Positions 310 through 15,548 of a stretch of DNA of 15,548 nucleotides are shown piece after piece. Below the pieces are notes generated by a model, which did not search any database, was not told the origin of the DNA, and worked only from the letters and a program-made list of their open reading frames with translations. Position 1 is the first letter of the stretch. Each line of letters starts with the position of its first letter. The DNA lies in the sequence record MK054233.1; one strand, written 5' to 3'. The translations under genes were made by a program, and so were the position numbers.

Positions 310-682
310 CCTCACTTTTGCGAAAAACTGAATATGTGATACTTAGCAACTGTGAGGCTTTGGAAAATTTGTAATTGTATAACTGCTCACTAATTTATAC
401 AAGAGATACCCCTGTTTTGGGGGTATATCTAGAATAAATTAGTGAGGGTTGAGAAATTTGCATATTTTCCCGGCGGTCACTAATTTTTAGAAGAAACTGC
501 CAAAAAAAGAGGTCTACTTTAAACCCAATCTACAAAAGTTTAAATCAAATTTACAAAAGTTTAAAGTAGACCTACTCCAGAAAAAGTTGCTTGCAAAAAT
601 TAGTGAGGGTTGAGAAATTTACAGGGGACACCTCTTCCAGAAAAAGTTTCTTCTAAAAATTAGTGAGGCTTTGGAAAATTTG
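310..682. repeat. Non-coding array of nested direct and inverted repeats; candidate replication origin
   Basis: Identical 24-mer AAATTAGTGAGGGTTGAGAAATTT at 436-459 and 597-620. Identical 20-mer at 352-371 and 663-682. Perfect 22-bp IR at 477-498/645-666 and 15-bp IR at 510-524/559-573. Tandem 14-mer TACAAAAGTTTAAA at 531-544 and 552-565. 60-bp period unit at 571-620/631-681. The repeats are directly visible; the origin role is inferred. Confidence 0.85.
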
Positions 683-721
683 AAAATTTATAAGTGGTCG
701 CTGTTTTTTACTAGCATCTGT

Positions 722-732
722 CAAAAAATGAG
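722..732 (-). terminator. T-tract terminator of the leftward operon
   Basis: Minus strand CTCATTTTTTG begins about 10 nt after the stop at 742. Confidence 0.5.
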
Positions 733-741
733 GTGTCAGTA

Positions 742-1044
742 TTACCTTGAAAAAGCGTCGTTAAACTTCTTCTTAATTCTTAATAAACTATCTAGGTGTT
801 TTAATTCGAGTTCGTCAACAAGTAGCACTTTACCGTCTTTGAGCCTCAAAATATAGTAAATTTCATTTTCCTCTCTTTTCCACCCTATTATCTCATAGCT
901 GTCATCCGGTTCCATGTAACGAAATATCGGCGGGTCTACAGTCCTATCGATGTAAAGAAACGCCAAATGTAAACACTCTTTAGCCCTTTCTATCGTTTTC
1001 TCGTTAGCGATTATCCCGTCAAACTCTTTACAGGAACTCGACAT
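742..1044 (-). CDS. Hypothetical protein (~100 aa), last gene of the leftward operon
   Basis: Overlaps the helicase stop. A GGTGA SD motif precedes the ATG at 1044, which I prefer to the track start at 1053. Confidence 0.75.
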   Translation of the reverse strand: MSSSCKEFDGIIANEKTIERAKECLHLAFLYIDRTVDPPIFRYMEPDDSYEIIGWKREENEIYYILRLKDGKVLLVDELELKHLDSLLRIKKKFNDAFSR

Positions 1045-2626
1045 ATTCCTCACCGCCTACCATCTTGTGGTTTACTAAGCCCCTTTCTTCGGCCCATTTT
1101 AGTACTTTTTCTGCAATCTCCTCACCGAGTATGCCATAAAATTCGCTGATCGTGAACTGCTTCCCCTTTAACTCTTTGTAAATTTCTGCCATGTTACCCG
1201 CAAACGTCAAATCGCCGTTACCATCCCTCTCTTCTTTATAACCGTTCACGACAAGGTCTAATACCTTTTGTCCGAATTCATTACGCCTCCATTTATTCCT
1301 ATTCGCTTTGTCCTTGTCAAGGTCTACCAGCCCTTTACGTGATAGGTTGTAGAGCCATGCCTTTGCTGTCTCTGTATCGACCTTGAGTCTCATTGCTATA
1401 GTCTTCGTTTCTTCGAATTCGGTACTGGTAGCCTGTAACGCTTTCAGTTCGACACTCGTTAGCCCTACCGCTGATACTAGGAAGTACCTCAATAGCTTTT
1501 GTGAGAAAAGTGAGTAAACTTCATCATCAACTACTTCTTTCCCTAACAACGATGCAAATATCTTCATAACTTTTAGGCCTTGGTCGTAAACTCTAAACGC
1601 GTACTGGTTATACTCCGTTATCACTTTCTTGAACTTCATGGCTATTTCTTTGGGTAACTTGACACTCCTCGGTGTATAGTACATCCATGCTATAGCCAGG
1701 TATTTTGTCACGGGGTCATATTCAAACGCGTTATCGCCCCTCTCTGCTATCTTCTCATATATCTTGTCAGTATCACCCCTTTCCAAGTCTAAGGCAACTG
1801 TCAAAAACCTACTCATTATCTGCGTCACTTGGTCGTTACTGTAGTCGATGTTAACAGCAGTGCTGACTACTGATGGCGGGTAGTCAACAGTACCGTAGTT
1901 AGTACCTATTTCGCCGTCACCTGTTTTCGCTGTTAAATTCGCAAGTCTACCCTCAGTCATTAAAATGCTCAACTCCTTAAACGCCTCAATGTCAATTGTC
2001 TCGACAATGAACAAACAGCGGTTTTTTAGCAACTTGCCGTTATCGTTGAACGCAAGGTAACTAAGGGCTTTCCGCGTCAGGTTTGACACCCATAACACGG
2101 CTCCATATCCTTCTTTTAGACTAAACATGTTGACGATACTCTTTACTGCTGAAGACTTCCCTGCTCCTGCACTCCCTAATACAAGTACACCAATTTTAGG
2201 AAGTCCTTCGTAAAAAGCAGACTTAATGGCTATCAATGTCAAAAGTTTCACTTCATCATCTCCTATATGCCATTTTTCCGATTGTCGTAAGAACCATGAT
2301 ATAGGGTCTTTTCTCAGTTCTTCCCACTGTTCCGGGAATTCCTCCATTACCCATTCCTGTAAAGGTTTTTCTACCGTATTTTCCGCTAACACTTGTCTGA
2401 CAAACTCGTTGAATTTCTCTTTTTCCCTCTTTATTGATGTACACCCTCCTCTTTTGAACGTCCCTTCCGTTATAGGATATGCTGTTTCTTTTCCGTCTTT
2501 AATATATCTGTAACTCGGTACGATGTAAACTATGCCGTCGTCAATCGTGGCATAAGCGTCTTCCTCGTTTATTTCCACTTCGATCTCGGCGTTTACACAC
2601 TCACTATCATATTGGTACCTCTTCAT
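1028..2626 (-). CDS. MCM-like AAA+ ATPase, putative replicative helicase, with C-terminal winged-helix domains (532 aa)
   Basis: Walker A GSAGAGKS; Walker B variant CLFIVE; a LMTEGRLANLTAK...PPSVVSTA segment like the MCM PS1-hairpin/sensor-1 region; arginine finger MSRF; wHTH-like TIAMRLKVDTETAKAWLYNLSRKGLV. GGAGGT SD and ATGA coupling to the upstream gene. Confidence 0.8.
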   Translation of the reverse strand: MKRYQYDSECVNAEIEVEINEEDAYATIDDGIVYIVPSYRYIKDGKETAYPITEGTFKRGGCTSIKREKEKFNEFVRQVLAENTVEKPLQEWVMEEFPEQWEELRKDPISWFLRQSEKWHIGDDEVKLLTLIAIKSAFYEGLPKIGVLVLGSAGAGKSSAVKSIVNMFSLKEGYGAVLWVSNLTRKALSYLAFNDNGKLLKNRCLFIVETIDIEAFKELSILMTEGRLANLTAKTGDGEIGTNYGTVDYPPSVVSTAVNIDYSNDQVTQIMSRFLTVALDLERGDTDKIYEKIAERGDNAFEYDPVTKYLAIAWMYYTPRSVKLPKEIAMKFKKVITEYNQYAFRVYDQGLKVMKIFASLLGKEVVDDEVYSLFSQKLLRYFLVSAVGLTSVELKALQATSTEFEETKTIAMRLKVDTETAKAWLYNLSRKGLVDLDKDKANRNKWRRNEFGQKVLDLVVNGYKEERDGNGDLTFAGNMAEIYKELKGKQFTISEFYGILGEEIAEKVLKWAEERGLVNHKMVGGEEYVEFL

Positions 2627-3042
2627 TTTGACCTCCTTAGCTCGATAACCGGCTTATCGAAAATCACGCGTTCGCAGTTGGCTTTATCGAAACCGAGACC
2701 GAGTTCCTCTAACTTCTTCTCAATTTCTTCGATATTTTCCTTTAACTGTTGTCTCCTTTTGCCTTTTACGTCATTTAAGGGGCATCTGGCATTAAAGCAC
2801 CATTTAGCGTCTGAACACATTTCAGGTGTGCCGTCATCTAACGGTGGCTGAATAATAATATCATTAATAACTAAAGGTGCTAGGGGGTCATTATTAATAA
2901 ACGCTATACCTTTTTTGTAAGTGCAATACCCTATACTGTACTTCCTATTACCAAACCTCAAGACGTTGACATACCATATTATTTTATGGTGGTATTTTTC
3001 GGGGTGTGTCCACAAGTCCTTAATGTATTCGTGGAGATCCAT
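2623..3042 (-). CDS. Hypothetical protein with a Cys cluster (C-x5-C-x4-CP), possibly metal-binding
   Basis: 139-aa ORF with GGGGT SD, coupled within the operon; motif MCSDAKWCFNARCPLN. Confidence 0.85.
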   Translation of the reverse strand: MDLHEYIKDLWTHPEKYHHKIIWYVNVLRFGNRKYSIGYCTYKKGIAFINNDPLAPLVINDIIIQPPLDDGTPEMCSDAKWCFNARCPLNDVKGKRRQQLKENIEEIEKKLEELGLGFDKANCERVIFDKPVIELRRSK

Positions 3043-3045
3043 CGT

Positions 3046-3552
3046 TTACCCCTTTAGTTTTGGTTTAGCCTTTTTCGCTTCTTCTACCCTTTCTTCTGTT
3101 TTCTCTTCTGTCTCTTTCTCCTCCTCTTCTTGTCCTTCGCCGTCTAACACTAGTATCTCGTCGTAGAACGTCTTATTCTGCTTCTTAGACACCTTGATTT
3201 TTAGTTTTGTACCCTCAGTAATCTCTTTGTTCTGCCATGCGTCGTAGAGTACTTCATAAGCCCTACCTGTTAGCTTCATAATCGCTTTGCCTCCTAACTC
3301 TTGGGCGTCATATTTCTTCGGCTTTACAACTTCATCACCGTCTTCCGTCTTCGTAACGACTTTCTCCGTGACGCTCTCAAACTTTCCGCTTACCGGCTTT
3401 ACGATAATACTGTAGTCTTCGATCTTCTTCACTGTACCGTCTTTCAACGCTATTTCTCTCTCAACGGCCTTTGGTGATTGCAGCACTTCTACGGTTACTT
3501 CGTCGAACGGCTTAACAATCGGTAACCTTTCCCTTTTCATTAATACTTTCAT
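3046..3552 (-). CDS. Putative ssDNA-binding protein (beta-rich core with acidic/charged tail)
   Basis: Alternating hydrophobic beta-strand pattern; tail GEGQEEEEKETEEKTEERVEE; located upstream of a helicase. The gene is solid; the function is inferred. Confidence 0.6.
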   Translation of the reverse strand: MKVLMKRERLPIVKPFDEVTVEVLQSPKAVEREIALKDGTVKKIEDYSIIVKPVSGKFESVTEKVVTKTEDGDEVVKPKKYDAQELGGKAIMKLTGRAYEVLYDAWQNKEITEGTKLKIKVSKKQNKTFYDEILVLDGEGQEEEEKETEEKTEERVEEAKKAKPKLKG

Positions 3553-3734
3553 GCGTTAACACCCTCCTTTAATACCTCTTGTCTCTTCTTGTCGATATAC
3601 CCTCTGCTTAATGCTTCAATGATTAAGATCTCAATTGCATCTGTTAGAGTTAGCTTTTCTTGTTTAGCTAAAAAAACGAATTTTTCTTTAATTTCACGAT
3701 CTAATTTTATTCCTACATACTCTCTCTCTTTCAT
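3549..3734 (-). CDS. Ribbon-helix-helix (CopG-like) regulator, 61 aa
   Basis: MKEREYVGIKLDREIKEKFVFLAKQEKLTLTDAIEILIIEAL fits the RHH pattern. The track start at 3788 runs through the promoter; ATG at 3734 sits at leaderless distance from the TATA box. Confidence 0.8.
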   Translation of the reverse strand: MKEREYVGIKLDREIKEKFVFLAKQEKLTLTDAIEILIIEALSRGYIDKKRQEVLKEGVNA

Positions 3735-3746
3735 GGCCAATTTATA

Positions 3747-3786
3747 TTTAAACAACAAAAGCATAAAAGTTTTTTGGTGTTTAAAC
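3747..3786 (-). promoter_or_regulatory. T5-type early promoter (leftward)
   Basis: Minus strand ACCAAAAAA-CTTTTATGC (BRE plus TATA); 36/40 identical to the reverse complement of 4281-4320. Confidence 0.75.
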
Positions 3787-3795
3787 ATAATTAGG

Positions 3796-4233
3796 CTAAG
3801 ATTTCAAGAATCTTTGTAAATATTTCAAGTCGTCTATAATCCTCTTTTTAGCCTCTTCATCAAGTATCCCCAATCTTGTAAATATTTCAACATATGGAAT
3901 CAAGATTGTCTGTCCCGCTAACGCCATTGCTATAAGTATCTTGTTAGGGTCTGCCTCTTTTTTCATTCGTTTATAGGTCTCAATACCCGGTTTCAGCGAT
4001 ATCGCGAAAAGTTTACCCTTTTCCGTGAGATATATCTTTTTTTCCCCTTTCTCTTGTTTCTCTTCTATAAAGCCTTCCTGAATAAGAAATTTCTTAGCGT
4101 CATAAAAAGTGGCGGTGGACATGGGGAAATCCGCGTTTACTTTCTTATATAAATCATATGTGGCTATCCCTTCATTATCATATATGTAGACTAATACTAT
4201 CGCTTCAGGGTAGAAGAAAGGAGTACTTTTCAT
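3796..4233 (-). CDS. f93: Winged-helix (MarR/PadR-like) regulator, SSV1 F93 homologue with a C-terminal extension
   Basis: N-terminus MKSTPFFYPEAIVLVYIYDNEGIATYDLYKKVNADFPMSTATFYDAKKFLIQEGF closely matches SSV1 F93 as I recall it. Start at 4233 fits the TATA spacing; 4242 is the alternative. Confidence 0.88.
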   Translation of the reverse strand: MKSTPFFYPEAIVLVYIYDNEGIATYDLYKKVNADFPMSTATFYDAKKFLIQEGFIEEKQEKGEKKIYLTEKGKLFAISLKPGIETYKRMKKEADPNKILIAMALAGQTILIPYVEIFTRLGILDEEAKKRIIDDLKYLQRFLKS

Positions 4234-4280
4234 ATATCGCATATATAATTTATAGTTTAAATACCAAACGTTTTAGTGTT

Positions 4281-4320
4281 GTTTAAATACCAAAAAGTTT
4301 TTATACTTTTGTTGTTTAAA
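4281..4320 (+). promoter_or_regulatory. T6-type early promoter (rightward)
   Basis: ACCAAAAAG-TTTTTATAC (BRE plus TATA) upstream of 4342; inverted copy of 3747-3786. Confidence 0.75.
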
Positions 4321-4341
4321 CAATAGATAGAGGGTCAAAAA

Positions 4342-4650
4342 ATGGTTGAACCCCAATACCAGGAAAAAGTTTTGGGTGAAGTTAGTTTGAATTTTTTTAT
4401 TCGTTCCGTAGAGGTTGAGGGAAGACATAACTTCTACTTCAAACTATACGTGAGAATAAAAGATGATAAGAATGGAACTGAAATCGATCAGCAGTTTCTA
4501 AGTCCAGAAGAGTATGAAACCCACCGCATTTTGAAAGACATCGAGAAATTGTATAATTTAGCCCGCTTTTCGCAAAATGAAAAATTGGCACAAGGGGCGA
4601 AAGAAGAGATTCTAAAATTAATTGCGTTACTGCTTTCGCGTGTAAGTTGA
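4342..4650 (+). CDS. a100: SSV1 A100-like early protein
   Basis: First gene after the T6-type promoter; MVEPQ start and KEEILKLIALLLS end resemble A100; GAGGGT SD. Confidence 0.7.
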   Translation: MVEPQYQEKVLGEVSLNFFIRSVEVEGRHNFYFKLYVRIKDDKNGTEIDQQFLSPEEYETHRILKDIEKLYNLARFSQNEKLAQGAKEEILKLIALLLSRVS

Positions 4651-7836: not shown

Positions 7837-10272
7837 ATGAAGTGGGGACTATCTTTACTACTACTAATCCTCTTACTCTCACCTATCTTAGCAAACGGTG
7901 TTATAACCGGGCCTCATCCATACTTAGATGGCGGAGGAGGTTTTACCGGGCCTTTCTTCAAATACTCTAACACAATTCAAGTTGGATCCTCTACTTTTTC
8001 TTCTAAATACAATGGTTCAACCCTTTCTACCGCACCATGGCTTAACCCGACTTACGTTTCGATATACAACACTTACTACCTTCAAGTTTTACCGAACCAA
8101 GAGTACATTTCAAATAACGTATCTCTTTCTCTTTCATCATCACAAATCGCTCTAAACGTCACATGGTTATTAGCGTCTTCCGGTAATTCCGGATCCTACG
8201 GTTCAATCGCCATAGGCTACGGTGTTAATTTTCCTTCAGGGTTTACGGGTAACTATGCACCCGCACCACCTTACGCCTCTGATGGGATTGTAGTTTATCT
8301 GGAAAAAGGGAGTTTCCCAACATATAGAATATTCGTATACTTTGATGGTGTGAAACAGTTAAACGTATCTGTGGGATCAATCAGTGTTGGGCAACAAATA
8401 GGTTTAGGGTTCTGGTACTTACCCGCTACAAACCAACTTTACGTTTATTACTATAACGGTACTCTAAAGACTTTTTCAATAACACCGGGTCAAGTTATCA
8501 ATAACCAATTTTATCCTCTTTCATTGAATACTATAAATAGTAATTATGTCATTGATGCTCAAAATGTTGGGCCGGGGTACGGTTACGGGCAGTGGGTGTT
8601 AATATCATACTCAATCTTCCAAACTAAGACATATAGTGCAACACTTAGCTATACATCTGTTATTTTAGGCAATGGTATTCAGGCTTTGGCGGGATTTACT
8701 GGTGCGTACAACCCTTTAAACGTGTCCACTAATGTGACCTCTTGGTCTGTTGTAGGTATCGTTAAGGTTGTAAATTATAGTGTTTCAAACTCACAATATT
8801 CATTGATCGGTAGTGTGAGTTACTTAACATCAACAAATACTGTTTACTTCATTCTTAATAGTATTTACCCCACATATAGTGTAAACACATGGTATCTTAA
8901 CGTAACGTTAGAGTTTCAGTTTGTAACGCCCTCAAGTACAGTCTACAAGAATATTACAATTCCGATTTTTGACGGGGGATTTGCGGTTCTTGTCCAAGTA
9001 AGCTTACCGCAATCATCATACCTATCAGGTCAAACTATCAGTGTTTCTAATTCTACAACTATTGAATATCCCTCTAATGCGGGATATTCGTTAGCCTTAA
9101 AACCGGTTGTAGAAATTAATATACAAGGTCTCACTAACGGCTTTGTGCCATTACCTTACACGGTTACTGCGAACGTTAACGCACAAACAACATATTATTA
9201 CGTTATAAACATACAATTCGGTCAATTCTCTCTAGGTGGTCAAACTGGTACAATAACAATATACCCCGTCAGCCAATTACCCGTTATATTCGTTTCACAA
9301 TATCCCACATCAGTTACGGCTGGTACTAAGGTGACTATAACTTTTCAATTCACTCTTAACACACCCGTTTCAAATGTGACAATGTCAGCGTTTAGCCAAT
9401 CCACTACGACTTTCGCATGGACTTACGCGTCTCTTTTATCGTCATCATCACTTGTGGAGTTTCAGGGGTACTGGCTATCAGCGAATGACGGAATCATAAT
9501 CATTACGCAAAGTCAAAACTATTTAATTCCCTTCAATTATGTAGGTTTGACGTTTTATAACAACAGTGTTAACACAATTCAGATTAACGTTGTAAATAAC
9601 GCGTTACAACTGAATGTTAATAATAACGTGCTAAACTTAGCTAACTCATCTAAAGTTATCGGTATAGGATTCTATTACGGTGCGGGGAAGTTAGTGTTAA
9701 ACTGGTTCTTTGTTAGCGGTATCGTTTTGCAGTCTGCCACTGCAAATCAGGCGTATACAATCTTAACGGGTACAAGTCTGAACACATTGACACAGTATAC
9801 GAATGGATACACTAACGCGTCAGGGTTTGGACAGGTAACCGTGACACTGACTGACACTCCTTACGAGTTAGTGGAAATCTACTGGGGTGGTCTGCAGAAA
9901 TACGTAATCCTAAACATTAGCGTCACTCAGCCTACTACAACTACAACTACGACTGTGAATACTTCAACATTAAACTACAACTACACTAATCCGTTTACTA
10001 ACAACATATCGCCTACCTCAACCCTTTACAACTTTAGCAATATGCAGCCATGGGCTGAACTAGTAGGGATAGTCATTGTAGTCGTCGTTACGTTACTAGG
10101 GTGGAAGTTTGGTGGAAAAGGTGGTGCTAGTGGTGGTGTAGTTATGGGGTTAATCGCCGTGTCCTATCTAGGTTTAGTGCCATGGTATATCTTCTACATC
10201 TTCATCTTTGGCATAGCGTTACTATTAGCGAAAATATTCGTAGATAGGTTTATGGGTGGTGAGGAGGAATGA
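7837..10272 (+). CDS. vp4: VP4 tail/host-adsorption glycoprotein (SSV1 C792 type), 811 aa
   Basis: Signal peptide; N-terminal GPHPY...GGGFTGPFF; many N-x-S/T sequons; Thr-rich linker; C-terminal TM helices; followed by b78. Confidence 0.93.
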   Translation: MKWGLSLLLLILLLSPILANGVITGPHPYLDGGGGFTGPFFKYSNTIQVGSSTFSSKYNGSTLSTAPWLNPTYVSIYNTYYLQVLPNQEYISNNVSLSLSSSQIALNVTWLLASSGNSGSYGSIAIGYGVNFPSGFTGNYAPAPPYASDGIVVYLEKGSFPTYRIFVYFDGVKQLNVSVGSISVGQQIGLGFWYLPATNQLYVYYYNGTLKTFSITPGQVINNQFYPLSLNTINSNYVIDAQNVGPGYGYGQWVLISYSIFQTKTYSATLSYTSVILGNGIQALAGFTGAYNPLNVSTNVTSWSVVGIVKVVNYSVSNSQYSLIGSVSYLTSTNTVYFILNSIYPTYSVNTWYLNVTLEFQFVTPSSTVYKNITIPIFDGGFAVLVQVSLPQSSYLSGQTISVSNSTTIEYPSNAGYSLALKPVVEINIQGLTNGFVPLPYTVTANVNAQTTYYYVINIQFGQFSLGGQTGTITIYPVSQLPVIFVSQYPTSVTAGTKVTITFQFTLNTPVSNVTMSAFSQSTTTFAWTYASLLSSSSLVEFQGYWLSANDGIIIITQSQNYLIPFNYVGLTFYNNSVNTIQINVVNNALQLNVNNNVLNLANSSKVIGIGFYYGAGKLVLNWFFVSGIVLQSATANQAYTILTGTSLNTLTQYTNGYTNASGFGQVTVTLTDTPYELVEIYWGGLQKYVILNISVTQPTTTTTTTVNTSTLNYNYTNPFTNNISPTSTLYNFSNMQPWAELVGIVIVVVVTLLGWKFGGKGGASGGVVMGLIAVSYLGLVPWYIFYIFIFGIALLLAKIFVDRFMGGEEE

Positions 10273-12133: not shown

Positions 12134-12366
12134 AGGTGATACATAATGATATACGTTTCAGAAAATTACGCATTGGACATACTTATTTTCGATATAACTA
12201 TGCTCATTACTGCACTACTATTCAGAAAGCCAAAGCCCAAACCCGTGAAATCAACATTAGACCACAAAACCATAAGGCGATTAGGGTATTACACCGTAGG
12301 AGCCGGGGTATTAACGCTCTTCTTAGGCCATTTGGGTTTTTACGAAAGTTTTTGGGAATACCTTGA
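12130..12366 (+). CDS. c84: Basic protein overlapping a92 (SSV1 C84 position)
   Basis: ATGA-coupled to a82; overlapping c84/a92 is known in SSV1. Translation is not shown by the sequence. Confidence 0.5.
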   Translation: MKVIHNDIRFRKLRIGHTYFRYNYAHYCTTIQKAKAQTREINIRPQNHKAIRVLHRRSRGINALLRPFGFLRKFLGIP

Positions 12367-12430: not shown

Positions 12431-13250
12431 TGGGAAACTACTTCATGCGTGGGAAGAAGAGCTTAAGAAAGCCCAAACGGTAGATGAGTTAAGGCAAAAA
12501 TATGAAGAAATGCAAAAGCAGATAGCGGATAGCAAAACGCTTAAACGCTTATACAAAGTTTATGAAAAGAGAGAATTCGAAATAAAGAAAGCACAGTTTG
12601 AGCAGTTGAAGGCTGAACTTTCAAAGAAGAAGAAGAGGTTCAAGAAAGAGAAGGTTGACGTTAGGGTTAAGGTAGTTAAGAAATGGATCAATTCGCGTTT
12701 GTTTACGGCTGAGCATTATGTGGCAATGCTGCAGCAATCAAAAGACGGGCTGCAGCTGCTATTTCTCAGAAGAGTGAAATTGGTTGAAAACCAGGGCTAT
12801 TTAATGTTGGAAAATAGGAAGATGAGAAAGTCATGGGTCTTAAACGCTGAACCGTTGTTACTTGAAAAGAGTAAATTCCCGTTTGGGCGGAAATTTGTAG
12901 CCGTACACTTTGTCCTACCAGACTATCCGTATACGCTTAACTTAACGGTTGACGAGAAGATTAGGCAATTAACGCTGAAGAGTCTTAACGCCCCTCAGAT
13001 TATTCACTCTATTGTTAGGACAAAGTTCTTTGAAGCACTTGCAAAAGTCGGTGGTGGGCCGGATTTTACAATGTTAGTTATCGGCGTTATAATGGGGATA
13101 GGGATAGGGGTAGCCGTAGGTTTCGGAATAGCAAACGCTAACTTAACGCATTTACTCTCTCAACACGTGACTAATAGCACAGTAACGCATGTTACATCAT
13201 CAACAACATCACCTAGTTTCACGATTCCAAGTAACAGTACAAAGGGGTGA
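12423..13250 (+). CDS. b277: Core protein, SSV1 B277 homologue (coiled coil plus C-terminal TM helix)
   Basis: MSDGKLL..EEELKKAQ start; INSRLFTAEHYVAMLQ; Gly-rich TM segment. Confidence 0.92.
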   Translation: MSDGKLLHAWEEELKKAQTVDELRQKYEEMQKQIADSKTLKRLYKVYEKREFEIKKAQFEQLKAELSKKKKRFKKEKVDVRVKVVKKWINSRLFTAEHYVAMLQQSKDGLQLLFLRRVKLVENQGYLMLENRKMRKSWVLNAEPLLLEKSKFPFGRKFVAVHFVLPDYPYTLNLTVDEKIRQLTLKSLNAPQIIHSIVRTKFFEALAKVGGGPDFTMLVIGVIMGIGIGVAVGFGIANANLTHLLSQHVTNSTVTHVTSSTTSPSFTIPSNSTKG

Positions 13251-13255
13251 GTTAA

Positions 13256-13720
13256 ATGGCTAAGAAGACAGAAGTAGAACAATTACAGAAAGAGAATAAT
13301 GAGTTAAAGAAAAAGTTAGCAGAGATAGAGAGTTTACTAAATAATAATAAGGAATTAGATGAGGATGAAAAGTTACAAGAGATAGAGAACCCCTACACGG
13401 TCACGAATAGGGCAATAACCGAGTTAGTAGAACCTAAGGACACAATGTTTTACCTTTCGGGGTCTCAGATATCACTGATTTTGACGGCGTTTGAGTTTGC
13501 AAGACTCCCTAGTTATTTCGGGGAAGAACCAGTTGTCGAGTTAGCGGAATTCGCTCACAAACTTAAGCACTATTTAGTTTCAAAGAGTGGAAGAGGAAGA
13601 AGGGATATACTGAGGGTACTTAGGGTGTCATCAGGTCAATCTAGGGAAAACGTGAATAAGAGTTTGATTAGTAAAATATTAAAGGGGACTGATATGGATG
13701 CCAAAGAAGAAGAAGGTTAA
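13256..13720 (+). CDS. a154: Core protein, SSV1 A154 homologue
   Basis: IENPYTVTNRAITELVEPKDTMFYLSG; 154 aa; position before b251. Confidence 0.92.
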   Translation: MAKKTEVEQLQKENNELKKKLAEIESLLNNNKELDEDEKLQEIENPYTVTNRAITELVEPKDTMFYLSGSQISLILTAFEFARLPSYFGEEPVVELAEFAHKLKHYLVSKSGRGRRDILRVLRVSSGQSRENVNKSLISKILKGTDMDAKEEEG

Positions 13721-14435
13721 ACATATCAATACGGGGCAGTTAGGGCAGATGATCATAAAAGAGATGCAAGAAAATGGTTTTCAAAGCATAATAATATTCG
13801 GTAAGCAAGGTGCGGGGAAAACTACTTACGCCCTAAAAGTAGGGGCAAGAATATTAATGTATTTATACCCAGAGCTTACTGAACATGACGCATGGTGGCA
13901 GGCATATAATCTTATGGTCTTTTCTCTAGATGAGGCAATAGAAAAACTGACAAGTGTAGTAAACACACATGAACAGGGTAATATAAACTATAGGTTACCA
14001 TTTTTGATAATTGATGACGCGAGCATTGACTTGATTAAATACGCATGGCATCAAGAACAAAATATCCAATTTGCTAAGTTATTTAACTTAGCTAGGACAT
14101 GGTCTACGGCATTAATTTTCACCACTCCATGGATAGATGACCTTCAGAAATTCTTAAGAGAGAAAGCATGGATAGTAGTGCAAGTACAAAAATTCGGGAA
14201 ATCTAAAGGAAACTATCCCCAGTCAATTGCATGGATATATAAGAGGACTATCAAATTGGTCAATGGGGAATTTAAGGGTAAATATGTAGAAAAATATTAC
14301 GATATCTTTAGGAGGGAAATGCCCAATGACCTTTATGAAGAATATATTAAAAGACGTGATAAGGTAATGGCGAAAATAGCGAGTGAGGTACTTGCTATAC
14401 TTAGGGAAAAAGCCTCAAAAGTACCAAGTACATAA
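13698..14435 (+). CDS. b251: P-loop ATPase, SSV1 B251 homologue
   Basis: Walker A GKQGAGKT, Walker B LIIDD; last gene before the convergent int. Confidence 0.94.
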   Translation: MPKKKKVKHINTGQLGQMIIKEMQENGFQSIIIFGKQGAGKTTYALKVGARILMYLYPELTEHDAWWQAYNLMVFSLDEAIEKLTSVVNTHEQGNINYRLPFLIIDDASIDLIKYAWHQEQNIQFAKLFNLARTWSTALIFTTPWIDDLQKFLREKAWIVVQVQKFGKSKGNYPQSIAWIYKRTIKLVNGEFKGKYVEKYYDIFRREMPNDLYEEYIKRRDKVMAKIASEVLAILREKASKVPST

Positions 14436-14438
14436 CGT

Positions 14439-14450
14439 TGTTTTTCTTTC
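14439..14450 (+). terminator. Pyrimidine-tract terminator after b251
   Basis: TGTTTTTCTTTC immediately follows the stop. Confidence 0.6.
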
Positions 14451-14540
14451 AATTCTACACGTGTAAGGTACTTGAAACGGGTCTAGTTTTATAGCGGGGG
14501 CAGTGTTTGCTTATTCCTAATATATATTATGTAAACCGCA

Positions 14541-14557
14541 AAAGAAAGGCTTATTAG
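14541..14557 (+). promoter_or_regulatory. Candidate promoter for the 31-aa ORF
   Basis: Purine-rich BRE AAAGAAAGG plus CTTATTAG, ending 23 nt before ATG 14581; same spacing as the other leaderless promoters. Confidence 0.5.
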
Positions 14558-14580
14558 CTTTTTAAATATATGATAAAAAT

Positions 14581-14676
14581 ATGGACTCGATATGGCTTTT
14601 AGTTTTAGCAGGCATTGGGTTGGAGTCACTCTTTATTTATTATATGGAAAGGCTAAGGCGTGTGTCCAACACGTAA
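14581..14676 (+). CDS. 31-aa single-TM peptide (below the track cutoff)
   Basis: MDSIWLLVLAGIGLESLFIYYMERLRRVSNT; hydrophobic helix with a basic tail; promoter-like element at the right distance. Confidence 0.5.
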   Translation: MDSIWLLVLAGIGLESLFIYYMERLRRVSNT

Positions 14677-14697
14677 GTTACATGCACCCTCTCTTAC

Positions 14698-14769
14698 TAG
14701 GGGTACCGGGGTTAAGGTACCCTATGGGGTACCGATGTACCCCCATGGGTGCCGGGTTCAGCCCGGCAC
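14698..14769. other. Three consecutive GC-rich hairpins at the int stop
   Basis: TAGGGGTACC/GGTACCCTA, ATGGGGTAC/GTACCCCCAT, and a perfect GTGCCGGG-TTCAG-CCCGGCAC. Confidence 0.7.
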
Positions 14770-15548
14770 TTTGGACAGCCATTCCGCGTACTTCTTATAC
14801 TCTTTTTTCGCTAAAGCGTATAAGTCCAAATAATGTTTTGTTAGCACGTCACTAGGTGTTCGTCCTTCTATGAAATCTATGACTTGACTTGGTATTTCCA
14901 ATTCCGCCATTTTTGTTGCCACGAATTTGCGAAAATATTTAGGCGGGACTAAGTTCAACCTCCTTATCGCACTGGTAATCTGTCCTTCAGTTATCTTTAT
15001 TTTCCGTAGAGGCGTGATGTGGAATAGGTAGAAACTCTTCTTTTGCCCCCTGACCCAATTGAGGACGTAAATACTAAAGCCGTCCTCATTAATTTCGTTT
15101 TTCTCGTCATAATTGCTTAGGACTTTAAGCACTTCTCTTTCTCTTCCGCCCGACTCTAAAAGTAGTCTGTAAAACGTGTATAACGCGTAGTTATCCCTTA
15201 CCGCGTTGAGGGTCTTCCAGACTTCTTCTAATGTCGGCACGCGTAAGTCCGGTTTCGTCTTTTTCGGTTTCAGGTCTTTAGGCGGGTCTTTGTTCAGCAC
15301 GAGTTTGTAGAAATTCCTCCACGCTTTGATGCAATTATTCGATTCTTTTCTTCCTTGCTTAACGCACGAGATATATTTCTTTATTGTCTCTTCACTGATA
15401 TTCTTACTACGTAAAGCAATTTCGAATTTGAGTAAATCACTTGCGGAAATTTCAGAGTTGTTAGAAAGCGTTAGATTAGAGTCAATTATTCTAACTCCTT
15501 TCAATTCATCATAATTAGCATTGGGGGTCTTAGGGGGTGTCCCCCCTA
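14758..15548 (-). CDS. int: SSV-type tyrosine integrase, catalytic C-terminal part (intC)
   Basis: Motifs ESGGR, PKYFRKF, FIEGR and TKHY match the R-K-R-R-Y catalytic set of SSV1 D335. The frame is open from the track's TTG at 15504 up to the window end. Confidence 0.96.
   Translation of the reverse strand, partial: GGTPPKTPNANYDELKGVRIIDSNLTLSNNSEISASDLLKFEIALRSKNISEETIKKYISCVKQGRKESNNCIKAWRNFYKLVLNKDPPKDLKPKKTKPDLRVPTLEEVWKTLNAVRDNYALYTFYRLLLESGGREREVLKVLSNYDEKNEINEDGFSIYVLNWVRGQKKSFYLFHITPLRKIKITEGQITSAIRRLNLVPPKYFRKFVATKMAELEIPSQVIDFIEGRTPSDVLTKHYLDLYALAKKEYKKYAEWLSKVPG
15531..15548. repeat. Hairpin/palindrome flanking att on the left (across the junction)
   Basis: TAGGGGG-TGTC-CCCCCTA. 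Confidence 0.75.

Follow-up and report, generated by a model that had tools for sequence, protein, structure and literature searches.

Where does the DNA of a spindle-shaped virus of Sulfolobus begin to replicate, and what part might be played by the dense cluster of repeats that lies beside the integrase gene in one such genome? Sulfolobus spindle-shaped viruses (SSVs) have served as model archaeal viruses for forty years and provide the basis of Sulfolobus vectors. Reviews up to 2022 report no characterised SSV replication origin (PMC6080066, PMC9608457). The stretch analysed here (hereafter, the window) is the full circular genome, 15,548 bp, of Sulfolobus spindle-shaped virus NL03.C02.05 (identical to MK054233.1), an Alphafusellovirus from Nymph Lake, Yellowstone, in whose record all genes are labelled 'hypothetical protein'. 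It contains a repeat array within a non-coding stretch of ~390 bp (352-737), next to a gene cassette that encodes an ATPase resembling minichromosome maintenance (MCM) helicases. Because this array combines many long lineage-specific sites, fixed phasing and dyad symmetry with an exclusive linkage to the helicase gene, we estimate at about 60% the probability that 352-737 serves a portable replication cassette as its origin or as the site of helicase loading, and we regard it as the best candidate for a fusellovirus replication origin so far. That the array is a specific protein-binding array functionally tied to the cassette is very probable.

The first-pass annotation of this region had listed at least seven AGTGA(G) boxes, nested inverted repeats around an AT-rich core and a 61-bp palindrome. 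All of these elements were recovered where it had placed them, but the repeat unit proved to be a different one. AGTGAG or its complement occurs at 311(-), 386(-), 441(+), 602(+) and 662(+), with an AGTGAC variant at 477-485(-), and the hexamer by itself is marginally enriched in the whole genome (11 found versus 5.7 expected). The longer word AATTAGTGA occurs five times, always within 387-666 and nowhere else in the genome, against an expectation of 0.32, and 0 of 200 shuffles reach five copies. The repeats of the array are real, far beyond chance. Alignment of the copies revealed that the true unit is not the hexamer but a bipartite iteron of ~60 bp. The iteron consensus, built from 43 distinct aligned copies from the window and its relatives, comprises a distal CACCYC or ACCCCC box, a spacer of 28-30 bp made of A- or T-tracts, a nearly invariant core (TTkCTwGTAAAAATTAGTGAs) and a tail (TkrGAAAAWTT); the flanks drift among copies whereas the core stays invariant.

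The window holds five intact iterons, one full-length iteron with a degenerate core and one truncated copy (Table 1). Segments 570-620 and 630-680, which are 82% identical, display the long repeat unit, and comparison of 436-513 with 657-734 (72% identical) exposes the full-length iteron 6, which had been overlooked. Five of the boxes first listed are genuine iteron cores and two are not. The box at 352 reads TGTGAGG and belongs to a truncated iteron with its 3' half alone, which marks the outer boundary of the array and of the cassette, while the box at 310 is a hexamer match in junction DNA beside the integrase-upstream segment. Since SSVs without the array (SSV2, SSV4) nevertheless share most of that segment (234 to ~340), the 310 box is simply a chance hexamer. 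At the other end, the array begins 5 bp past the stop codon of the last cassette gene, which encodes a protein of ~100 amino acids (aa). Iteron 6 lies 40 bp from iteron 5 (the copy at 658), its minus-strand T6 tract falls just past that stop codon, and its degenerate-core variant is kept in three relatives (loci L005, L006 and L019). Spacing within the array is fixed: the convergent pairs 2/3 and 5/6 are exactly 40 bp apart and the divergent pair 1/2 is 50 bp apart. Relatives show the same distances, exactly 40 bp for nine of 12 convergent neighbours and 50 bp for three divergent pairs.

Iterons 1 and 2, extended and set back to back, make up the 61-bp imperfect palindrome (386-446), whose outer arms are perfect over 13 bp. 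Its fold as single-stranded DNA has a predicted energy of -19.6 kcal/mol (z = -9.5 relative to shuffles), and it would form a strong hairpin or cruciform according to this model. The same back-to-back arrangement is found in two relatives (L014, L019). A scan for bacterial promoters and terminators, not applicable to archaea, returned the inner hairpin of this palindrome as the sole feature. Farther in, the 22-bp inverted repeat (477-498/645-666) is present, with 21 rather than all 22 positions matching, and the 15-bp inverted repeat that it encloses (510-524/559-573) is perfect. The latter provides the arms of a central dyad flanked by iterons 3 and 4. Within its AT-rich core stand two tandem TACAAAAGTTTAAA 14-mers (531-544 and 552-565) and three TTTAAA sites at 518, 539 and 560, an exact 21-bp phase, with two of the three inside the 13-mer ACAAAAGTTTAAA. 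The hairpin of this dyad has z = -4.6, and a central dyad with two or three phased TTTAAA sites recurs in five relatives (L005, L006, L012, L014 and L019). As ACAAAAGTTTAAA is conserved in relatives, it looks like a specific site of the form B recognition element (BRE) plus TATA, rather than mere AT-richness; by its letters, this unit looks like the BRE+TATA promoter form of Sulfolobus, and TGAAAATTTATA at 681-692 has promoter form as well. The analysis supports the initial view of the region as an ordered set of protein-binding-type repeats with symmetry about an AT-rich element at its centre.

The array is tied to the neighbouring helicase-like gene, as had been suggested, in 14 of 14 SSV genomes, in metagenomic, proviral and plasmid-like relatives, and in genomes where the block carrying both is inverted. 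In the phage collection, 14 Yellowstone SSV genomes encode a close ATPase homologue; precisely this set also matches the array DNA, and other SSVs match just the integrase-proximal 150 bp of the array query. Across nine array-bearing loci, whose ATPases are 68-100% identical to that of the window, the 9-mer core occurs 40 times in the 14.5 kb downstream of the ATPase and ~100-aa genes (1.5 kb per locus) and nowhere in 93 kb of other sequence. Neither iterons nor the ~100-aa gene are present in L015, a tenth locus at the end of a degraded provirus. Contigs with ATPases 68-91% identical to that of the window come from metagenomes, a provirus of Acidianus manzaensis and a conjugative-plasmid-like element (TraG, VirB4-type), and each of these contigs carries three to ten iterons in both orientations, directly after the ~100-aa gene and nowhere else. 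In two Joint Genome Institute contigs (L016, Ga0326765_100038; L017, Ga0326764_001254) cassette and array lie among TraG, VirB4 and FtsK-type genes, so that the setting is conjugative-plasmid-like, not viral; here a hicB-like gene stands between the ~100-aa gene and the iterons. With respect to the remaining genome, block 762-3558 lies the other way round in MK054223 (L005) and MK054225 (L007), its similarity to MK054223 running over 12454-15253 in inverted orientation, and the array has moved along with it to abut T6-type genes, not the integrase. Since the far-side neighbour of the array varies in this way (integrase, T6-type, hicB-like), its sole constant neighbour is the 3' end of the cassette. 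This inversion of the T5-type block gives several sister genomes an SSV-K1-like 'T5+' layout with nearly all genes in one direction; because unrelated DNA has taken the place of the block ends, more than a simple flip was involved.

Natural variants of the array were also observed. SSV-K1 (SSV9), with an ATPase 82% identical to that of the window, has the same layout with one-base-shorter AATTAGGAG boxes around a central tandem TATTGAACTGGTT repeat. In its record (L009, 6100-8040), the homologue of the 532-aa ATPase is split by frameshift into open reading frames (ORFs) A460 and C78, and the ~100-aa gene is unannotated and interrupted. Because SSV-K1 replicates, these interruptions may have arisen as errors of sequencing or may be tolerated by the proteins. 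A search for covariation with the AATTAGGAG box found only three conservative changes between the first winged helix of this frameshift-split gene and that of the window. One lineage (L018, 4975-6045; L023, 6069-6977) has an array enlarged to ~1 kb, in which 9-10 iterons form four or five 40-bp pairs that are separated by segments rich in a second short repeat, GGTATTAC(C); single copies of the latter lie near the array in the window (733-741), SSV7 and SSV-K1. The records MK054225 (L007, ~12202-12220) and MK054222 (L008, ~15167-15202) contain N at the centre of perfect iteron palindromes, which suggests assembly ambiguity or heterogeneity. An inverted-pair pattern scan of IMG/VR recovered L023 as the one true relative, together with eight unrelated contigs that have different AATTAGTGA palindromes and encode no ATPase homologue. 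Unrelated viral contigs in that database (L021, L022, L026, L028 and L029) carry tandem AATTAGTGA(A/C) as inverted pairs and encode no ATPase homologue; these repeats are probably origins or operators belonging to different systems in which the word arose by chance. A 14-mer scan of IMG/VR gave single chance matches only, and short patterns are insufficiently specific at that scale.

The cassette itself has a conserved order: a small protein of ribbon-helix-helix (RHH) type, a ~170-aa protein, sometimes a ~139-aa protein or a superfamily 2 helicase, the 532-aa ATPase, the ~100-aa protein and then the array. An AlphaFold model of the ATPase built with 32 homologues (predicted local distance difference test, pLDDT, 82; predicted template modelling score 0.74) displays an N-terminal beta domain (residues 1-50 beta-rich), an AAA+ core and winged helices at ~390-460 and 478-532. 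Foldseek ranks MCM2-7 subunits and archaeal MCM first among PDB structures (E 3e-9 to 1e-6, probability 1.0), at a whole-chain template modelling score of just ~0.4, followed by RuvB, BchI and MoxR; in a viral structure library, the model matches SSV-K1 A460, SSV7 B471 and many phage helicase or primase-helicase proteins. A Walker A motif (GSAGAGKSS, 151-159) and an SRF motif (272-274) are present, and G151, G156, K157, S158, Q269 and R273 are at least 90% conserved across the 32 homologues. The SRF motif of MCM proteins carries the arginine finger. Because the window ATPase has no match to the Pfam MCM family (PF00493), its sole Pfam match being DUF815 below the cutoff, we call it MCM-like, not a member of the MCM family; a distant homologue, P0040, has a weak MCM match on record. 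The model thus agrees with the initial description of a helicase with winged helix-turn-helix domains, as two C-terminal winged helices are predicted. Sequence searches linked the ATPase to an unannotated PHROG, and PF27228 ('MTBMA_p00010_2nd') is recorded for homologues. A PDB sequence search gave no match, and the Pfam scan found no prim-pol domain and no Cdc6 match for the ATPase.

This ATPase family is small, with 38 clusters at 50% identity among 1.8 billion representative proteins. It includes SSV-K1 A460, SSV7 B471, ASV1 C674 and ORF735 of the satellite plasmid pSSVi, the sole plasmid homologue (30% identity). The ~100-aa protein was modelled by AlphaFold2 as a beta-sheet with a long C-terminal helix (pLDDT 81), for which no fold match was found in the PDB. 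At the head of the cassette, relatives encode a 64-69-aa protein with weak RHH matches. The 79-aa protein of the window has no Pfam match and its RHH nature is derived from position and sequence pattern, which makes it a putative ribbon-helix-helix protein.

Table 1. Elements of the repeat array and genes of the adjoining cassette in the window
Feature	Position	Strand	Description
Truncated iteron	352-371	+	3' half only, GTGAGGCTTTGGAAAATTTG; identical to 663-682; lacks the AAAAATTA part
Iteron 1	362-424	-	Intact; core TCACTAATT at 387-395; distal ACCCCC box near 419-424
61-bp palindrome	386-446		Iterons 1 and 2 back to back; inner G/C hairpin 406-426
Iteron 2	408-470	+	Intact; core AATTAGTGA at 437-445; 50-bp divergent with iteron 1, 40-bp convergent with iteron 3
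Iteron 3	452-514	-	Intact; core TCACTAATT at 477-485 (variant AGTGAC); T7 tract; distal box GACCTC
Central dyad element	510-573		15-bp arms, three phased TTTAAA, two ACAAAAGTTTAAA units
Iteron 4	569-631	+	Intact; core at 598-606; TCCAGAAAAAG at 576-586 in spacer
Iteron 5	629-691	+	Intact; core at 658-666; TCCAGAAAAAG at 636-646 in spacer
Iteron 6	673-735	-	Full length; degenerate core AACAGCGA; TCGCTGTTT at 698-706 is the reverse complement of AAACAGCGA
~100-aa gene	742-1044	-	Always between ATPase gene and array; orthologues in nine loci, 19 invariant residues
532-aa MCM-like AAA+ ATPase	1028-2626	-	Two predicted C-terminal winged-helix domains; candidate initiator/helicase
Upstream cassette genes	2623-3788	-	139 aa (2623-3042), 168 aa (3046-3552), 79 aa (3549-3788)

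How might such an array work as an origin? The winged helices of the 532-aa protein, perhaps aided by the ~100-aa or the RHH protein, would read the AAAAATTAGTGA core and the distal CACCYC box. Given the fixed 40-bp convergent and 50-bp divergent spacings, the proteins bound on either side of the dyad would share one helical face, and ATPase rings would next assemble in opposite orientations around the central element. The segment with phased TTTAAA sites would then open and the host replisome would take over; binding of TBP/TFB at the ACAAAAGTTTAAA units, or a short transcript, may help this opening. A more elaborate proposal, which we hold only tentatively, describes a mobile pairing of an MCM-like helicase with a bipartite-iteron origin that moves among alphafuselloviruses (in either orientation), spindle-virus-like elements, proviruses and conjugative-plasmid-like elements of Sulfolobales. 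Under this proposal, each subunit would use its two winged helices to recognise both half-sites of a single iteron, ~three helical turns apart, and the BRE/TATA centre with its 21-bp phase, far from being a passive AT-rich site of melting, would be opened with the help of TBP/TFB or a short origin transcript. Such transcript-aided opening would echo the old, unproven idea that Tind primes replication in SSV1.

Several points weigh against placing the origin here. SSVs without the cassette, such as SSV1 and SSV2, replicate, so the cassette may be accessory or a second replicon, and another origin with a B251-type ATPase may exist. What the analysis shows is the anatomy of the repeats, how they are conserved, that they accompany the gene pair exclusively, and an MCM-like modelled fold with winged helices for the ATPase; the identity of the binding protein, the loading of rings, the melting of the centre and the start of replication at this site are inferred. 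The central segment 514-573, previously described as an unwinding element, is only moderately unstable (z ~2, rank ~264 of 15548 among 60-bp windows), and the least stable DNA of the genome is instead the T5/T6 divergent promoter region at 4136-4335, also the minimum of cumulative GC skew. GC skew is confounded by gene orientation and displays no switch at the array. The centre may also be a promoter, which leaves room for a regulatory role or for transcription-assisted opening. Finally, no array was found downstream of the ATPase gene in SSV7, ASV1, pSSVi and two metagenomic distant homologues, and the SSV1-type origin has been predicted near the T5/T6-type promoters (PMC6080066, PMC9608457), which are divergent in the window (4243-4450) and 3.5 kb from the array.

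The T5/T6 promoter region of the window (3740-3790, 4229-4335), which corresponds to the origin predicted in SSV1 (PMC9608457), contains GTTTAAATACCAAA twice and TTGTTTAAAC several times. In the longer and more distant ATPase homologues (670-735 aa, 25-38% identical), inverted or tandem repeats cluster within the gene itself, near its 5' end and ~140-280 nt past the start codon: SSV7 B471 (L148 2969-3036), ASV1 C674 (L149 2985-3045), L151 (3148-3295) and pSSVi ORF735 (L010 482-600), where they form a 119-bp near-perfect palindrome. By analogy with the lambda O gene, these intragenic repeats could be an intragenic origin.

A promoter-like centre raises the alternative that the array is a transcription-control region, with RHH or viral winged-helix operators, promoters and terminators that insulate the helicase operon or regulate a neighbour, which we consider unlikely. 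SSVs are rich in small regulators, and F55 of SSV1 binds repeats at early promoters (PMC9608457). The ACAAAAGTTTAAA units and TGAAAATTTATA have promoter form, and a whole-genome scan for a purine-rich BRE followed by TATA placed three of its four matches inside the array; this crude pattern also missed the real promoters of the genome, so it is weak evidence that carries little weight either way, and no annotated gene lies within 150 nt after the promoter-like elements of the array. Iterons 3 and 6 carry T6-T7 tracts of the archaeal terminator kind, and another transcription unit always starts just downstream of the array, but that unit may be the integrase, T6-type or hicB, the constant neighbour being only the 3' end of the helicase operon. 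In addition, six to ten 60-bp sites with fixed 40/50-bp geometry far exceed the needs of operators.

It is similarly improbable, and slightly more so, that the array is a maintenance site, either a centromere-like partition site or one acting by copy-number or incompatibility 'handcuffing', with initiation elsewhere, for instance at T5/T6. Inverted and direct repeats beside a maintenance operon are typical in established plasmid biology, the arrays of L018 and L023 have grown to 9-10 copies as centromere-like arrays often do, and the T5/T6 region combines the least stable DNA with the GC-skew minimum. Yet the cassette encodes no ParA/ParB-type or other partition NTPase, its sole ATPase being helicase-like; it also resides in integrating elements, which have less need for partition; and the dyad centre with its phased TTTAAA sites would be left unexplained.

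A role mainly as a recombination hot spot, for inversion or exchange of the T5-type block between co-infecting fuselloviruses, is very unlikely. It would fit the inverted block 762-3558 in MK054223/5, the truncated iteron (352-371) that ends the array, and the N at the centres of perfect iteron palindromes in the GenBank records of relatives, but the other end of the inverted block has no iterons, hence there was no simple flip between array copies. The invariant 12-bp core and exact spacings across lineages point to recognition by a protein, not to homology-driven exchange alone, and recombination at origins is a common by-product of origin function. Least probable of all is a host-dependent origin bound by cellular Orc1/Cdc6 through mini-origin recognition boxes (mini-ORBs), an idea prompted by the two exact TCCAGAAAAAG copies at 576 and 636, which are present, one preceded by T to give TTCC: the other reads CTCC, the TTCC-N4-GAA core (PMC1904270) has 0 matches genome-wide versus 2.5 expected, the stretch varies among relatives (CTCCGGGAGAG, CCCCAAAGTGA, TCTGGCAAAAG), and TCCAGAAAAAG is simply the spacer of iterons 4 and 5 and no separate element. 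The invariant TTCC-N4-GAA core of ORBs and mini-ORBs was scanned for as TTCCNNNNGAA.

An origin in the array would share features with several known systems. The minimal replicon of pRN1, a tested precedent from Sulfolobus hosts, consists of the repressor gene orf56, the replication-protein gene orf904 and a downstream origin stem-loop (PMC4234260). It thus has the same order of RHH gene, replication ATPase gene and cis element 3' of the operon, and its cis element likewise contains a long palindrome. ORF904, however, is a prim-pol fused to a superfamily 3 helicase, whereas the cassette ATPase is MCM-like, and the pRN1 origin is a single ~100-nt stem-loop rather than six to ten 60-bp iterons around a dyad centre. 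The core origins of SV40/polyomavirus and papillomaviruses, whose mode of loading is the model behind the first-pass annotation, also have inverted recognition boxes that flank a centre, an A/T tract and a palindrome, and a virus-encoded ring helicase with a sequence-specific DNA-binding domain (large T antigen, the E1 double hexamer). These helicases belong to superfamily 3 and have their DNA-binding domain at the N-terminus, unlike the C-terminal winged helices predicted for the cassette ATPase, and their boxes are penta- or hexamers in ~64 bp rather than bipartite ~60-bp iterons over 390 bp. Archaeal chromosomal origins (PMC1904270) similarly have multicopy inverted repeats around an AT-rich centre next to a gene for a winged-helix AAA+ protein, but the array has an unrelated repeat without the ORB core, and the fold of the adjacent AAA+ protein is MCM-, RuvB- and BchI-like, not Orc1/Cdc6-like. 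With the iteron origins of theta plasmids and lambda the array shares multicopy initiator-specific repeats beside or within the initiator gene and a specificity that drifts with lineage, SSV-K1 having AATTAGGAG boxes; the distant subfamily (SSV7, ASV1, pSSVi), with repeats inside the gene, recalls lambda O. In the plasmid and lambda systems the iterons are mostly 17-22 bp direct repeats, to which a dedicated initiator other than the helicase binds, whereas here both orientations occur, pairing is fixed at 40/50 bp and the candidate binder is itself helicase-like.

Among fuselloviruses, an origin has been suggested for the region upstream of the SSV10 integrase (the 'Tori' stem-loop), where virus function was lost upon one transposon insertion (PMC6080066). 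Tori and the array occupy the same slot between the start of the integrase gene and the end of the T5-type operon, and both contain a large stem-loop. The T5 genes of SSV10, which we could compare by description only, are listed without a helicase-sized ORF (PMC6080066), and SSV10 is absent among the 30 listed of 31 records matching the array DNA. The origin predicted at Tind/T5/T6 in SSV1 would lie ~3.5 kb off the array, at the equivalent of 4243-4450. Neither the SSV1 nor the SSV10 proposal has been functionally characterised (PMC6080066, PMC9608457).

The remainder of the window has the usual SSV organisation. MK054233.1 is linearised within the integrase gene, which occupies the minus strand of 14758-15548 plus 1-226. 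Bases 1-49, inside this gene, match the 3' half of a tRNA (Rfam tRNA, 32 bits), the attP site typical of SSV-type integrases; an Rfam scan of 1-1200 found beyond it sub-threshold noise alone. The array occupies the 515-bp gap at 227-741 between the integrase start and the 3' end of the minus-strand operon 742-4428, which holds the position of the SSV 'T5' early operon. Elsewhere the genome encodes the SSV core, with homologues of B277, C166 and B129, a C80-type RHH protein and a VP4-sized protein. A 228-aa P-loop protein is encoded downstream of B277, in the gene position of B251, and is presumably the B251 counterpart given that position. Short tandem repeats (ACTACAACT and similar) lie at 9934-9984, inside the 811-aa VP4-sized gene.

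Our literature search retrieved no account of this iteron or its array, and none that describes the A460/B471/C674/ORF735 family as MCM-like; a full-text search for the iteron core gave unrelated primers only, and the words inversion, helicase, origin and intergenic do not appear in the source paper of the MK0542xx genomes. As a kind of element, iteron origins beside their initiators are well known. New here are the bipartite 60-bp iteron with its 40/50-bp pairing, the phased TATA-like centre and the mobility of the cassette across viruses and plasmids. For the SSVs, the array provides a precise, testable origin candidate with a defined consensus, geometry and candidate initiator, and its natural variants, among them the AATTAGGAG box found in SSV-K1 and the enlarged arrays, suit comparisons by specificity swap. 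An origin at this site would explain what a small family of so far uncharacterised MCM-like ATPases does and offer a simple system for origin-specific loading of an MCM-like ring, and the compact combination of helicase and origin could become a new replicon for the genetics of thermoacidophiles.

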